Origin: Chlorokybus atmophyticus
Lineage: Eukaryota; Plantae; Mesostigma and Chlorokybus algae
Assembly: GCA_009103225.1 (NCBI GenBank)
Contig: RHPI01003599.1
Coordinates: 124,001 to 188,000, forward strand
Length of the DNA stretch: 64,000 bases
Direction of reading: 5' to 3'
Positions 14,320 to 46,925 of the stretch are shown piece by piece. The notes below the pieces were generated by a model. That model saw nothing but the letters and a program-made list of their open reading frames with translations, had not been told where the DNA came from and searched no databases. Numbering within the stretch: position 1 is the first letter of the stretch; each line of letters starts with the position of its first letter. A program made the translations under genes and the position numbers.

Positions 14320-14564
14320 TGTGCGAATACAGCCCCCTCTTACAAGCCTCCCCCNNNNNNNNNNNNNNNNNNNNNNNNNNNNNNNNNNNNNNNNNNNNNN
14401 NNNNNNNNNNNNNNNNNNNNNNNNNNNNNNNNNNNNNNNNNNNNNNNNNNNNNNNNNNNNNNNNNNNNNNNNNNNNNNNNNNNNNNNNNNNNNNNNNNNN
14501 NNNNNNNNNNNNNNNNNNNNCCTTTTCAATGGGGGTGTTGTCATAGGGGGGTTCCATTCGCACA
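14320..14564. mobile_element. Small inverted-repeat-bounded element whose interior is an N run (14355-14520); same repeat family as 6296-6350
   Basis: tgtgcgaat...ccccct.t.acaa is on the left and its reverse complement ttgtcataggggg...attcgcaca is on the right. The reverse-complemented right end (ccccctatgacaa...ccccc...aaaagg) resembles 6296-6330. Confidence 0.5.
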
Positions 14565-15249: not shown

Positions 15250-15540
15250 TGACCTGCCCAATGGAGCAGCGCAGTAGGATATTCTTGTCTACAGACCACT
15301 TCGTGACGCACGCTGCGATTTGCGTCCTGCAACCCGCGGATGGGCATTTATGTGCTGACTGTCCACTCTCAAAAAAGCAACTCTCAAAGCCATGCAACAG
15401 AGTGCATTGGGTTGTTGAGGTGGTGGGAGAGGCGGCGGCGGAGGACGCCGCCGAGGAGGCGAAAGCGGAGACGAAGGATATACAGGACAAGGAGGACGGG
15501 TGGAGAGGTTGACAGGAAGCGGCAGCCATGCAGGCCATTG
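15250..15540 (-). CDS. Possible exon of a small Cys/His protein (degenerate RING-like)
   Basis: Reads QCTLLHGFESCFFESGQSAHKCPSAGCRTQI followed by a cag|gtcagg donor. The RING spacing is incomplete and no other exons were identified. Confidence 0.2.
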
Positions 15541-16221
15541 GCGCCGGCCTGGTTGTCGCTGGCGCAGGTTGGTTGGTTGCTTGCTGATCATGATGATGGT
15601 GATGGTAATCACAAACATCCTGACGGTGATAGTGATGGTGATGGTGATGTCGTAGTAGCATTGCTAGTACTTGGCTTTGTGGTTAGATGACGATGACAGT
15701 GCAGCTGTCTGTGCGGTAGATCGTACCTGCATCCGCCTGCATTGCCATGAACATGCGCTGAGCTGCCACGTCAAGCAAGGATAAACTCGTCGTTTGTGTG
15801 AGAATAATTCTTCGACGTGGACATTGCTAAAAGCATTGACTAAAACTATGTGTGTATGGATCTGTTATGGGGACCGTGGCGTTGTTCATGTGCAAGACTC
15901 TGATTCAGCAGTGAAAGCTCACTCCAAGCTTGCGTCAACTGGTTGTGACGCTCTGCAAGACTATGCATATGTACTGTCATCATCACAGCAGACTCGTTTA
16001 TATAAGCACTCATGCAAACATACGCACACGCATGCGCATACAGCCGTGTACATGGGCACGCTCGCGCAGGCACAAGCACACATTCAAAGCTGTCAATGTC
16101 CACTGCTTGAGTCGAGTAGAACAAAACACGCATACACTGACAGCCGTTGTCGACAACTTTGTTGCAATCAACACATAGAAGAGAGACAAACACGTCGTAT
16201 GTGTGTTGCTGTTCATCTCAG

Positions 16222-19200
16222 GCTTGGGTTACTTATCCACCCGCGTCGGCACCAGCTCCCGCCCACCTCGTCCCCAACCCCTCCCCCCTCCTCTTCCCTC
16301 TCTCAACGGCGACACCCACACCAACAACACCACCACCGACCCCATTGACAATCGTCAAGTCAACCTCTCCCCCGCCGCGACGGACGCCCTCGACTTCGCG
16401 CAACCGCTCTCGTTCGTCGTGTTCGGAGCCTCGGGAGACTTGGCCAGGAAGAAGCTGTATCCCGCGTTGGCGGCGTTGCTGGGGGAGAGGAAGATACCGA
16501 CGCATGTTAATGTGGTGAGTGGTGGGTAGGGGGATGTGTTTGCGCACGTGCAGGCATGCTCAAGCATACATACGCACGCACATGCACATGCACGCGCATG
16601 TGTATACATTTTGCGTGCGTCAGGGTGCATGTGGGGCACGCTGACGCACGCACACGCACTTGCCCGCGTGTACGGGTTGTGCACACACATACGCCATCAC
16701 GCATGCCTGTGAGTGCGCACGCACACTTGCGTGCGCACTCACAGGCATGCGTGATGGCGCAAGTCGAGCGTCAATGCAATTGCGCATCCTCGCACTCATA
16801 CCTACATCAGAAACATGTATTGCAAAACGAACGAACCGACACATGTTGTGTCGTGACCCTTGCCATGTGTTCCCCCTCTGTCCAGGTTGGTTTCGCGCGT
16901 TCCGGTTTCACGGACGCGGAGTTCCTGTTGAAGCAAGCGGTGGGCGTGAAGGGGAGCGAGGACGAGAGGAGGAGCTTCTTCGCGAGGTGCAGTTATTTTC
17001 AAGGAGGGTACGACGACCCGGAGAGCTTTGCGCGGCTAGACGCAAAACTACAAGCATACGAAACAGTAAGAATCTGACACGATAAACACATATACCCTTC
17101 CAACCACGTACATACGCAGGCATACGCGCACGCACACGCACACGCATGTGCACTCACACGCGCGCACGTGTGTGCGCACGCGCACATGCGCGTGCGCACA
17201 CACACATAGACGCGCAGGCACGTGCCCACGCCCCTAACCATGCGCAGGCGTGCACACATGCACGCGCATGAGTTTTGTGTTGATACTGTGGTCACGCGCG
17301 CAGTTCGGTCCTGGCAACCGCGTGTACTTCTTATCTGTCCCCCCGACCATATTCGCAACGGTCTGTTCTCTGATCAAGCGGCACGCCGAGAGCCCGACGG
17401 GGTTCACGCGCCTCATCATTGAGAAGCCGTTCGGAAGAGACTCGCAGAGCTTTGAGGAGCTCAACAAGGCCACTGCCTCGCTTTTCAGGTGTGTGTGCAT
17501 GATAGTGTCCCCGTGTGTTTGCGTGTGTGTCATTGTGTGCGCGTACACACACGAGCACGTGTGCGCGCGCGCACACACAATTCAGAACACACACATTTGC
17601 GTACACACGCACGCGCGCTTGCGTGTATGCATATGTTGTTGACCCAACTGTTTGCCTACAATTGAGATTGATTGGCTTAACAGGGAGGATCAACTCTTCC
17701 GCATTGACCATTACCTTGGCAAGGAGGCAAGTGCGTGCATCCATGCATACAAACACTTGTCCCAACCACACAAGATTCACAACTCAACTGTTGCAGGTGG
17801 TTCTCAACTTGACAACATTGCGGTTCTGCAACACCATCTTCGAGCCTGTGTGGGACCGGCGTCACGTTGCGAGCGTGCAGTTGACGTTCAAGGAAGACAT
17901 CGGCACGGGCGGCCGAGGAGGGTACTTTGACCAGTTTGGCATCATCAGAGACATCATGCAAAACCATCTGCTGCAGGTAGTACAACAAGATACATATGTG
18001 TACGTGTGAGCACATGTGCACGTGTGCATGCATGTGCGCTCTTTGTGATTGTGCACGCTTGCGCGTGTGCATGTGTTATGTTTGCCGCAAGACCTTTTTT
18101 AATAGTCCTTATGACGCTCTGCAGGTCATAAAAGATAATAGAACTGATGTTGGACGCTGTGTGCAGGTGTTGATGTTTCTGGCGATGGAGCAGCCGAAGA
18201 GCCTTTCGCGCGAGGACATCATGAAGGAGAAGGTCAAGCTGCTCCGGTGCATGAAGACGCTCACGCTGGACGACGTGATCCTCGGCCAGTTCACCGCACG
18301 CTCCTTCAAAAAGGTTCACTATGCACACGTGATGCTGGTGACTTTGATGCTAGTAAATCTATGTGTTGTACACGCGCGTATCACATAACCCAAACACAAT
18401 GCCAGATACGTCACGTTGGTTCTGCGTTGCTTGCATGTCAGAATGTCACATAGTGTGCATACCATAAAACCATGCGATATTGTGACGGCACTGCATAGTA
18501 GCCAAGCATGTATCACAACCATCAAAGGGTAATCACTTGATATAAATCCTCCTCTCTCTCAGTTTGGTGATTCGCGTGTCGAGCCCGGCTACTTGGACGA
18601 TCCGACAGTGCCTGCCGGCAGCCGCTGTCCGACATTCGCGATGCTGAGGCTGAGCATCGACAACGACCGGTGGCGCGGCGTGCCGTTTCTGATGACGGCG
18701 GGGAAGGGGCTGGACGAGCGGATGGCGGAAGTGAGGATCACGTTCAAACCGAAGGGGAACAGTGTGGTGCCGCCATCACAAGGTAGAGGGGGGAGTCGAT
18801 GGGGGTGTGGGCTTCCGTGTGTGGGTGCGTGGGCACTCTGTTCATGGGTAGGTGTAAGTGTGCGTGTGGTTGTGCGCGTGCTTGTGAGCGTCTGGTTTCA
18901 ATGTATGGGCGTTTGTTGCGGACGTGGGCGTGGGCGCGGTGGGTATAAGTGTGCGCGTGTGGGTGCGTGCGTGCGTGCGTGCGTGTAGGCATAAGCATGC
19001 CATATGCGCGGGCGCGCGTGTGTGTGTGCGTGTACGCGCGCATGCTCGTGCGCATGTGTGTATGTGTGTGCGTGTACGATCATACATAGGTGTACGGGTG
19101 GATGTGCACGTGGGCATGCTTATGAGTGTGTAGGTGCGCGTGTGCGAGGGCACGGACAACAACCTCGTTGCAGGTACGATTCCACCCAACGAGCTTGTCA

Positions 19201-20275
19201 TGCGGATACAACCGGACGAGGCGATCTATTACCGTGTGATGAACAAGAAGCCCGGGTTTGACCAGGTCGCGACGCCCGCGGTGCTTGACCTGTCGTACCA
19301 GAGCACGTACCAAGGCATAAGGGTGGCAGACGCATACGAGCGCATGTTCCTAAATGCGGCCAAAGGAGACGGGAGCTTGTTTGTCGGCACAGATGAGCTG
19401 AAAGAGGTGGGAAGTCCAAATGCAACACACGCACATGCATGTGCATGGGCACGCACACTCATGAGCACACACACATGCATGCACGTGCGTCCACGCGCGC
19501 GCGCACACACACACACACACTCATACACACACGCACACACTCTCGCAAGCACGACTCGCGCACACGCACAGGCACACAACTCCATAACATGACGGTTGTG
19601 TTCTTGCCAGGCTTGGCGCATGTTCACCCCGATGCTCCATGCGATCGACAAGCAGCGCCCGCTGCCCACGCCGTACCCGTTCGGTTCGCGCGGTCCCGCC
19701 GGCATGAACGCGTTCGCGCTCAAGTGCGGCGTGAGGCTGTCCACAAGCTGGGAGGAGTTCCTCGGGACGCACGCGGAGCAGGCGGAGAAGTTGCAGGCCC
19801 TGTTTGAGGTAAGAGTTGTTGTGCATGAAGCGATGTACTCCAACTCACTACCTGTTGAGTGGTTTGATACACACACGCGCCCACACGCTACCACACACAC
19901 ACACGCGCACATGCATGCACACACGCACGTGCACACACACACGTGCGTATGTGCACGCACAGGCACATGCACAATTTGTTTTGTCAGGGCTTGGACAAGA
20001 ACCGCGACGGTAGCATCGACGTGAAGGAGATACGCGAGTTGATGAGGAGGTTTTACGACGGGAGGCCACCGCCCGAGGACAAGATACAAAAGGTACAGCA
20101 CATAATACCTCAGCACGTTGAGTGCCATGCGTGGACACGCCGTCCCCATGTTGCGCAGGTGTTGGAGAGGTTGGATGAGAATATGGATGGCAGCGTGTCG
20201 TGGGAGGAGTTCAAGAAGGGCACGCCGTTGCTTGTGGACTGGTCGGCAACCACCGCGGTGACACCCACAGCGTAG
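16222..20275 (+). CDS. G6PD: Glucose-6-phosphate 1-dehydrogenase with a C-terminal pair of EF-hands; 11 exons identified, first (ATG) exon not located
   Basis: Exons 16222-16514, 16886-17065, 17304-17488, 17684-17726, 17797-17976, 18167-18313, 18563-18782, 19174-19406, 19611-19808, 19988-20092 and 20159-20275 have consistent phases. Motifs: [70 protein letters not shown] loops: [12 protein letters not shown] and [12 protein letters not shown]. Confidence 0.95.
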
Positions 20276-21024: not shown

Positions 21025-21599
<575 letters not shown>

Positions 21600-45769: not shown

Positions 45770-46100
45770 ATAGCATGACGCAGATAAGGTAACCTACTCA
45801 AACCAGTCTCCTCCCCCCCCNNNNNNNNNNNNNNNNNNNNNNNNNNNNNNNNNNNNNNNNNNNNNNNNNNNNNNNNNNNNNNNNNNNNNNNNNNNNNNNN
45901 NNNNNNNNNNNNNNNNNNNNNNNNNNNNNNNNNNNNNNNNNNNNNNNNNNNNNNNNNNNNNNNNNNNNNNNNNNNNNNNNNNNNNNNNNNNNNNNNNNNN
46001 NNNNNNNNNNNNNNNNNNNNNNNNNNNNNGGCGAGGGCGGGGGGGGGGCTGTCTGGGAAAAAATCCATAGCATGATGCAGAAAAGATGACCGACTTCCAG
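45770..46100. repeat. N run (45821-46029) flanked by similar direct-repeat units and poly-C/poly-G
   Basis: catagcatga.gcaga.aag.t.acc.act...ccagtctc occurs on both sides of the gap. Confidence 0.6.
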
Positions 46101-46712: not shown

Positions 46713-46925
46713 GCAAGCAGCAAGGTAGGCAGAGGCNNNNNNNNNNNNNNNNNNNNNNNNNNNNNNNNNNNNNNNNNNNNNNNNNNNNNNNNNNNNNNNN
46801 NNNNNNNNNNNNNNNNNNNNNNNNNNNNNNNNNNNNNNNNNNNNNNNNNNNNNNNNNNNNNNNNNNNNNNNNNNNNNNNNNNNNNNNNNNNNNNNNNNNN
46901 NGCAAGCAGCAAGGTAGGCAGAGGC
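46713..46925. repeat. Tandem repeat (gcaagcagcaaggtaggcagag) spanning an N run (46737-46901)
   Basis: The same unit lies immediately before and after the Ns. Confidence 0.7.

Follow-up and report, generated by a model that had tools for sequence, protein, structure and literature searches.

An EF-hand pair at the C-terminus of a predicted cytosolic-type glucose-6-phosphate dehydrogenase of Chlorokybus atmophyticus and its protist relatives

The alga Chlorokybus atmophyticus carries a nuclear gene in which the reading frame of a complete, cytosolic-type glucose-6-phosphate dehydrogenase (G6PD) continues into a pair of EF-hands. The gene occupies 15528-20275 on the plus strand of a 64,000-nucleotide stretch of contig RHPI01003599.1 (positions 124,001 to 188,000 of the forward strand, assembly GCA_009103225.1), which we refer to as the window. 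Translation and phase checks resolve it into 12 exons, and the product is 646 residues long with its putative first exon included. The same combination of domains, here called G6PD-EF, recurs in what appears to be a large, old and widespread protist subfamily, in which no named member other than Chlorokybus was found from the green lineage. We found no description of an EF-hand G6PD in the open-access full-text literature, and databases label the subfamily proteins simply as G6PD. G6PD-EF is a real variant of the enzyme, apparently undescribed, and control of its activity by Ca2+ is a plausible hypothesis.

Gene structure and the two parts of the predicted protein

Pfam scans of single exons tile the families G6PD_N (PF00479, positions 1-97) and G6PD_C (PF02781, positions 2-292) in order. 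The 646-residue model holds GASGDLA at 82, which we take to be the NADP fingerprint, and GFARS at 113, whose Arg presumably contacts the NADP 2'-phosphate. EKPFG follows at 211, then RIDHYLGKE at 239, assumed to be the substrate-binding nonapeptide, and at 298 the region of the presumed catalytic His. Among the 120 family columns with at least 95% conservation, 117 are kept in Chlorokybus; one of the three apparent differences, R52, arose because the model was added at fixed alignment length and slipped locally, and the Arg aligns correctly in the family alignment. Judged by these motifs, the core reads as catalytically complete and cytosolic-type (animal-like).

The preliminary description of this gene held that the thioredoxin-target Cys pair of plastid G6PD is absent, and this proved correct. 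The N-terminal stretch matching the plastid Cys-pair region has only one Cys, so a plastid-type pair cannot form. Most family members have one Cys, within KQCVNVK, at a place where Chlorokybus has Ala. In the potato plastidic enzyme we take the regulatory pair to be Cys149/Cys157, and it is by these positions that the Chlorokybus protein lacks the Cys pair of the plastidic, thioredoxin-regulated G6PDH (P1/P2).

Beyond the G6PD C-terminus (YPFGSRGP), the frame continues through two more exons, as had been proposed. The junctions 19808/19988 (gtaaga...tgtcag) and 20092/20159 (gtacag...gcgcag) are both GT-AG, in phase and collinear with homologues. Two canonical EF-hand loops of 12 residues each lie where the preliminary description had put them, at 19994-20029 and 20174-20209, and both fit the strict consensus of D1, D/N3, D5, G6, I/V8 and E12. 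When the exons are translated separately, exon 11 matches positions 11-44 of EF-hand_7 (PF13499) and exon 12 positions 46-64; because these positions run on across the two exons, they rebuild one contiguous EF-hand pair. The tail alone matches homologous tails at E values of 1e-21 to 1e-24 and carries the features of the G6PD-EF subfamily, namely the W of SWxEF, F20, the FYDGRxP linker and a terminal W (LLVDW). With its two canonical loops the Chlorokybus pair is a putative Ca2+ binder.

Alignment of the 646-residue model with its homologues, several of them transcript-derived, is collinear, and all 11 junctions are free of gaps. Against the protein of Urceolus, the closest named homologue among the matches listed, identity is 57% over 589 residues spanning core and tail. 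All introns are GT-AG except 17727-17796, a GC-AG intron with a typical donor, GCAAGT. Splicing from a GT at 17731 instead of the GC at 17727 was rejected, as it breaks the conserved GKE/VVLNL junction; in all homologues GKE runs straight into V[VI][LM]N. Some internal exon ends were corrected by 1-2 nt. An exact search of JGI metagenome contigs for the exon 10/11 junction gave no match, as expected for a rare soil alga, and this is no evidence against splicing.

An exon upstream of 16222 is needed because the exon that begins there starts in phase 1 without any ATG. Between the run of N at 14355-14520 and exon 2, the interval 15528-15567 is the sole candidate with an ATG, an open reading frame and a GT in the right phase. 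Exon 1 has no homology support, and the same first exon is used in the public model of the gene described below.

Table 1. Exons of the predicted G6PD-EF gene in the window and what each encodes
Feature	Position	Strand	Content
Exon 1 (putative)	15528..15567	+	Supplies the start codon; encodes MQAIGAGLVVAGAG; 3' end in phase 1; least secure exon of the model
Exon 2	16222..16514	+	Pro/Thr-rich non-conserved N-terminal stretch, then start of the Rossmann fold with GASGDLA; Pfam G6PD_N 1-33
Exon 3	16886..17065	+	G6PD_N; GFARS and the stretch without a Cys pair
Exon 4	17304..17488	+	G6PD_N; EKPFG motif
Exon 5	17684..17726	+	RIDHYLGKE nonapeptide; followed by the GC-AG intron
Exon 6	17797..17976	+	Start of G6PD_C, presumed catalytic-His region; Pfam G6PD_C E 1.1e-24
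Exon 7	18167..18313	+	G6PD_C; from homologue alignment
Exon 8	18563..18782	+	G6PD_C; Pfam E 1.6e-20
Exon 9	19174..19406	+	G6PD_C; Pfam E 1.6e-16
Exon 10	19611..19808	+	End of G6PD_C (YPFGSRGP), SWEEF helix, entering helix of EF-hand 1 (EKLQALFE)
Exon 11	19988..20092	+	EF-hand 1 loop 19994-20029, exiting helix, linker RFYDGRPP; EF-hand_7 11-44 E 1.3e-5, EF-hand_1 E 3.8e-5
Exon 12	20159..20275	+	EF-hand 2 loop 20174-20209, exiting helix, LLVDW, stop TAG 20273-20275; EF-hand_5 E 1.3e-4, EF-hand_7 46-64

A HMMER search of the full library with the 66 residues of exon 10 returned a 100% identical protein, P0001 (EukProt EP00898, C. atmophyticus; JGI Chlat1 gene Chrsp75S07585), of 581 residues. Compared with its relatives, P0001 has one exon in the wrong frame, 21 intron-derived residues at the GC-AG intron and three conserved core segments skipped; its Pfam G6PD domains still reach 261.8 and 77.1 bits. 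It also uses an acceptor at 20020/20021, with which the first Ca2+ loop is lost. We rejected this acceptor, since the loop that it deletes is present in homologues, and its choice in P0001 weighs little because P0001 has other defects that break G6PD homology. The public gene model is wrong and conceals half of the sensor, and the splice sites of the preliminary description are the better ones.

The introns of the gene (16517-19987) are of low complexity, either CA/CG-rich or TG/CG-rich, and their strand bias alternates (18783-19173 is G/T-rich, 19407-19610 C/A-rich). The intron that separates exons 2 and 3 contains, at 16687-16764, an inverted repeat of 37 nt whose arms are 95% complementary and 4 nt apart, and several other introns hold shorter imperfect palindromes. 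Assembly gaps appear as N runs at 14355-14520, 14970, 21106, 45821-46029 and 46737-46901; the first of these, some 1 kb before putative exon 1, could affect the true 5' end of the gene. Some 750 bp downstream of the stop codon there is an unbroken (GA)n microsatellite, about 570 bp long (21031-21599), which accounts for the purine skew of the 2-kb block downstream of the stop.

Distribution and conservation of the EF-hand tail

The search with exon 10 returned 187 representatives at E <=0.001, many of which match all 66 residues, the helix beyond G6PD included, and then run on for roughly 60-100 more. The best 120 of 6720 G6PD hits were listed for a search with P0001, and most of these 120 carry a precomputed PF13499 or PF00036 after G6PD_N and G6PD_C. 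The preliminary description had allowed that the architecture might prove both common and already characterised. It is in fact common across protists and no singular invention, with a homologous tail in 88 of the 112 full-length closest relatives; no paper characterising it was found.

Named members come from several groups: the euglenid Urceolus cornutus; the dinoflagellates Tripos fusus, Ansanella granifera, Gymnodinium smaydae, Biecheleria cincta and Karlodinium veneficum; Paulinella chromatophora in Rhizaria; the chlorarachniophytes Bigelowiella natans, a second Bigelowiella (MMETSP1359), Norrisiella and Partenskyella; the pelagophyte Aureococcus anophagefferens (XP_009032692.1, UniRef100_F0XVR8, known to databases only as 'glucose-6-phosphate 1-dehydrogenase'); and Picozoa sp. 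COSAG06. Many further members are environmental sequences. Because several of the named members come from transcriptome assemblies, the fusion exists on mature mRNA. It is also found as an uninterrupted 660-codon open reading frame (P0172) on genomic contigs of 83-84 kb (JGI 3300021058, L003 4001-5983), where it adjoins a gene with a diatom pyrenoid-shell domain, a neighbour that points to the fusion in diatoms or close relatives as well. In full-length members EF-hand_7 scores above the Pfam gathering threshold, reaching 51 bits in homologue P0190. The named hits include no further protein from the green lineage; since the majority of hits come without an organism name, absence is not proven. 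A word search with the tail of P0190 (484-575) returned the query alone and is uninformative on whether the tail occurs in other enzymes.

Some members carry additional domains. Five marine proteins of about 915 residues from ENA, Tara and JGI data (P0168, P0170, P0179, P0233 and P0248) place a His_Phos_1 (phosphoglycerate-mutase-like) domain ahead of G6PD and the EF-hand pair, and these clusters have many members each in ocean metagenomes. P0231 joins 6-phosphogluconolactonase (6PGL), found in only a few relatives, to G6PD and EF-hands. The Tripos fusus proteins P0012/P0154 combine a Luciferase/LBP N-terminal domain and a P-loop kinase-like domain with G6PD and EF-hands, and P0188 is a tandem G6PD-G6PD without a tail.

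To describe the tail across these proteins, we built a hidden Markov model of 84 columns, from SWEEF to LLVDW, which matched 141 of 279 fetched proteins and yielded 103 distinct near-complete tails. These 103 tails share one length; measured past WRxFxP, tail length forms a tight cluster at 137-150 residues, and past YPFGxxxP it is about 95 residues. The best-kept columns are W2 (92%), E4 (84%), F20 (99%), D45 (92%), G46 (93%), R47 (88%) and P49 (89%), with linker positions F43 and Y/F44 and the W of the last column also among the most conserved. In the second loop D1 is kept in 87%, D/N3 in 79%, D5 in 79% (D/N/S in 93%), G6 in 80% and E/D12 in 98%; the first is weaker (D1 72%, G6 87%, E12 66%). 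This pattern clearly points to selection on the tail module.

A quick maximum-likelihood tree was made from 112 G6PD cores with the tails cut off, its rows being listed best hits and cluster members, with the tandem duplicate P0188 left out. It is unrooted and covers only the tail-bearing neighbourhood, as no canonical plant or animal G6PD was among the rows to serve as outgroup. Proteins lacking a recognisable EF tail are nested among tail-bearing ones, with 9 state changes against 22 expected under shuffling, which fits secondary decay or loss of the tail. One group of them (P0240, P0243, P0247, P0250, P0260, P0264, P0276, P0277 and relatives) has a disordered tail of 80-200 residues, in which a basic end motif, TPPR(K/Q)WR(K/R)LK(S/A/M)H, is conserved in most members inspected. 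Chlorokybus forms its own branch, of length 0.39, inside the tail-bearing set and is not nested in any single donor clade; it falls between the Urceolus group, with chlorarachniophytes further out, and a large dinoflagellate-rich group. This position fits an old gene over a recent transfer, a choice that this tree cannot decide.

Predicted structure and the site of attachment

Structure was predicted with AlphaFold2 for P0190 rather than for the Chlorokybus sequence, from an alignment of 83 sequences. P0190 has 584 residues and two canonical hands, and its tail is among the closest to that of Chlorokybus (ending in LVAWTATS, against LVDWSATT). The full-length model has a mean predicted local distance difference test score (pLDDT) of 91.3 and a predicted template modelling score (pTM) of 0.89, and pLDDT in the tail is 85-96. 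The tail comprises helices at 489-495, 500-510, 520-530, 538-548 and 558-568, with short beta bridges in both loops. Folded alone, it takes the same fold at a pLDDT of 75.9 (72-87) and a pTM of 0.62. The higher confidence within the whole protein hints that the EF-hand pair may pack against the G6PD core.

In a Foldseek search with the P0190 model, human G6PD was the best match, with a template modelling score of 0.93-0.95 relative to the target and about 485 of 584 columns aligned; in sequence the two match at 459 bits over residues 14-483. None of the solved G6PD structures found by Foldseek covers the tail, coverage stopping at about residue 490 of the P0190 model. The human or cytosolic enzyme (EC 1.1.1.49; PDB 2BH9, 2BHL, 6E08, 7SNF) has the two-domain fold and the catalytic and coenzyme motifs in common with G6PD-EF, but is without its roughly 95-residue Trp helix and EF-hand pair.

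The tail-alone model resembles the two-EF-hand, four-helix unit of known Ca2+ sensors (Z 9.7-10.1, rmsd, root-mean-square deviation, 1.9-2.5, 69-73 residues). Its match to polcalcin Phl p 7 has Z 10.1 over 69 of 69 residues at rmsd 2.1, that to the troponin C C-lobe Z 9.8, and that to the calmodulin C-lobe Z 9.7 at rmsd 1.9. Among the top 50 structure matches, all recognised chains are EF-hand proteins or constructs based on calmodulin or troponin, and a profile of 90 tails matches calmodulin lobes at about 39 bits per lobe. The tail differs from calmodulin in being joined covalently to an enzyme, in a linker that is longer by two residues and holds the family-specific FYDGRxP motif, and in an additional Trp helix at its N-terminal end and a conserved Trp at its C-terminal end.

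In human G6PD the structural NADP+ sits in the C-terminal region, which also lends support to the active dimer or tetramer, and the last residues presumably close the structural-NADP+ site beside the dimer interface. Exon 10 aligns with human residues 461-502, and the first EF-hand helix begins directly after the equivalent of Q502; because the alignment ends there, the Trp helix and the helix that leads into EF-hand 1 take the place of the last dozen or so human residues. We take the human structural-NADP+ contacts to be R370, R393, Y401, D421, R487, K403 and K366. Most of them are retained: by alignment, R370, R393, Y401 and D421 are identical in P0190; by eye, the Chlorokybus model keeps R487, with Arg for K403 and Met for K366.

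Possible roles of the tail

We know of no intrinsic Ca2+ sensor among the described controls of G6PD, which include NADPH inhibition, plastid thioredoxin, phosphorylation or acetylation and cyanobacterial OpcA. Intrinsic EF-hands do couple Ca2+ to redox flux in NOX5/RBOH/DUOX, in mitochondrial glycerol-3-phosphate dehydrogenase and in plant NDB1, and in NOX5 the Ca2+-loaded EF-hands bind the enzyme's own dehydrogenase domain. These differ from G6PD-EF in catalytic domains, EF-hand position and membrane context, and EF-hand redox enzymes mostly consume NAD(P)H, whereas G6PD makes NADPH. Closer in setting is PtIDH1, the NAD-dependent isocitrate dehydrogenase of Phaeodactylum tricornutum, which like the Chlorokybus enzyme is an algal dehydrogenase of central metabolism with a C-terminal EF-hand domain, of about 70 residues (PMC7460673). 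It belongs to an unrelated enzyme family and was absent from the best 60 solved-structure matches listed for the G6PD tail profile. The study reports the enzyme from only a few stramenopiles, and no Ca2+ activation of PtIDH1 was demonstrated (PMC7460673). G6PD often serves as a fusion partner; other G6PD fusions are known, G6PD::6PGL of Plasmodium, Giardia and Trichomonas and H6PD, and a 2011 survey of them mentions neither calcium nor EF-hands (PMC3148214). Those fusions join consecutive enzymes of the pathway, whereas G6PD-EF adds a signalling domain; they also require the 6PGL domain PF01182, which no Chlorokybus exon, nor P0001, matched in the Pfam scan.

The reading that we favor, at somewhat under even odds (about 0.45), is that the tail responds to Ca2+ while docked near the C-terminus of G6PD, on the part that supports the oligomer, with Ca2+ occupancy changing oligomer stability or catalytic rate. 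The EF-hand pair would pack against the C-terminal part of the G6PD body, a rise in cytosolic Ca2+ would fill both loops, and the pair would change conformation. That change would alter the stability of the active oligomer, the catalytic rate or both, and a Ca2+ signal would in this way be translated directly into NADPH supply. A bolder version, which we consider doubtful, would make the pair a true Ca2+ switch on the structural-NADP+/dimer region and an ancient eukaryotic Ca2+-to-NADPH device, kept in Chlorokybus as a green-lineage relic and lost before land plants.

Several observations count against a Ca2+-responsive module. By the standard test the first loop is canonical in 62 of the 103 tails and the second in 75; 42 tails have two canonical loops and 8 have none, and Ca2+ ligation would be the common state of the family, not a universal one. 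Conservation across the same tails is higher in the FYDGRxP linker and two aromatic residues than in the Ca2+ ligands. In Urceolus and P0184, which stand nearest to Chlorokybus, the first loop is shortened and non-canonical, and in a nested clade of 12 members the EF tail has been replaced by the disordered one, ending in TPPRKWRKLKSH. Such decayed loops in many relatives leave room for a tail that may be mainly structural. For Chlorokybus itself, splicing was read from genomic sequence and homologue alignment, and the proposed Ca2+ effect from the protein sequence and a predicted structure; the putative N-terminus is the least certain part of the model, and the compartment hangs on it.

A mainly structural tail would act as a clamp on the dimer or tetramer or as a stabiliser of the C-terminus, with Ca2+ or Mg2+ bound constitutively or dispensable and activity not following Ca2+ signals. 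We judge this main rival reading rather unlikely, although it draws on much of the same evidence: the best-kept residues of the tail (W2, F20, FYDGRxP and the terminal W) are non-ligands, many members retain the tail with one or both loops decayed (the second in Aureococcus), and the tail is modelled with more confidence in the full enzyme than alone. In PtIDH1, deletion of the EF-hand domain disrupts both dimer and activity, and a mutant in four ligands of the Ca2+ site keeps near wild-type activity while losing Ca2+ tolerance (PMC7460673). Yet both Chlorokybus loops are strictly canonical, the conservation of D1, G6 and E/D12 in the second loop is hard to explain without metal binding, and structural and regulatory roles are not mutually exclusive. 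Alternatively, the loaded pair might open a hydrophobic cleft for a protein or membrane, for example near an NADPH consumer, relocating G6PD with its kinetics unchanged. The likeness of the tail to a calmodulin lobe, a target-binding module, speaks for such targeting, as do the further N-terminal domains of some members, which suggest larger complexes. We think it distinctly unlikely, since the high confidence of the tail in a model of one chain points to a contact within that chain and not to a lobe that hangs free, and there is no known partner and no conserved target-like helix identified.

That the EF exons belong to a separate downstream gene, or are never spliced to those of G6PD in an artefactual or dead gene, is highly improbable. 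The Chlorokybus fusion comes from genomic DNA and not RNA, the P0001 acceptor drops the first loop, and the metagenome search for the junction was empty; but the junctions are canonical and in phase, the entering helix of EF-hand 1 is encoded within a G6PD exon, and the Pfam profile is contiguous over the last two exons. Moreover, dozens of fused homologues align collinearly with the model, and they include transcripts and a genomic open reading frame without introns.

G6PD is the step that commits carbon to the oxidative pentose phosphate pathway, and a main source of the cytosolic NADPH used in antioxidant defence, oxidative bursts and biosynthesis. If the tail does respond to Ca2+, this intrinsic sensor would be a direct signalling input to the enzyme beyond metabolite feedback, redox state and covalent modification. 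Since many abundant marine protists carry the module on their G6PD, a single biochemical finding would apply across much of the eukaryotic plankton, and a true switch would be active today in dominant groups such as dinoflagellates, pelagophytes, chlorarachniophytes and probably diatoms. Such a finding would also inform how Ca2+ signalling came to be connected with redox metabolism in early eukaryotes and early streptophytes.

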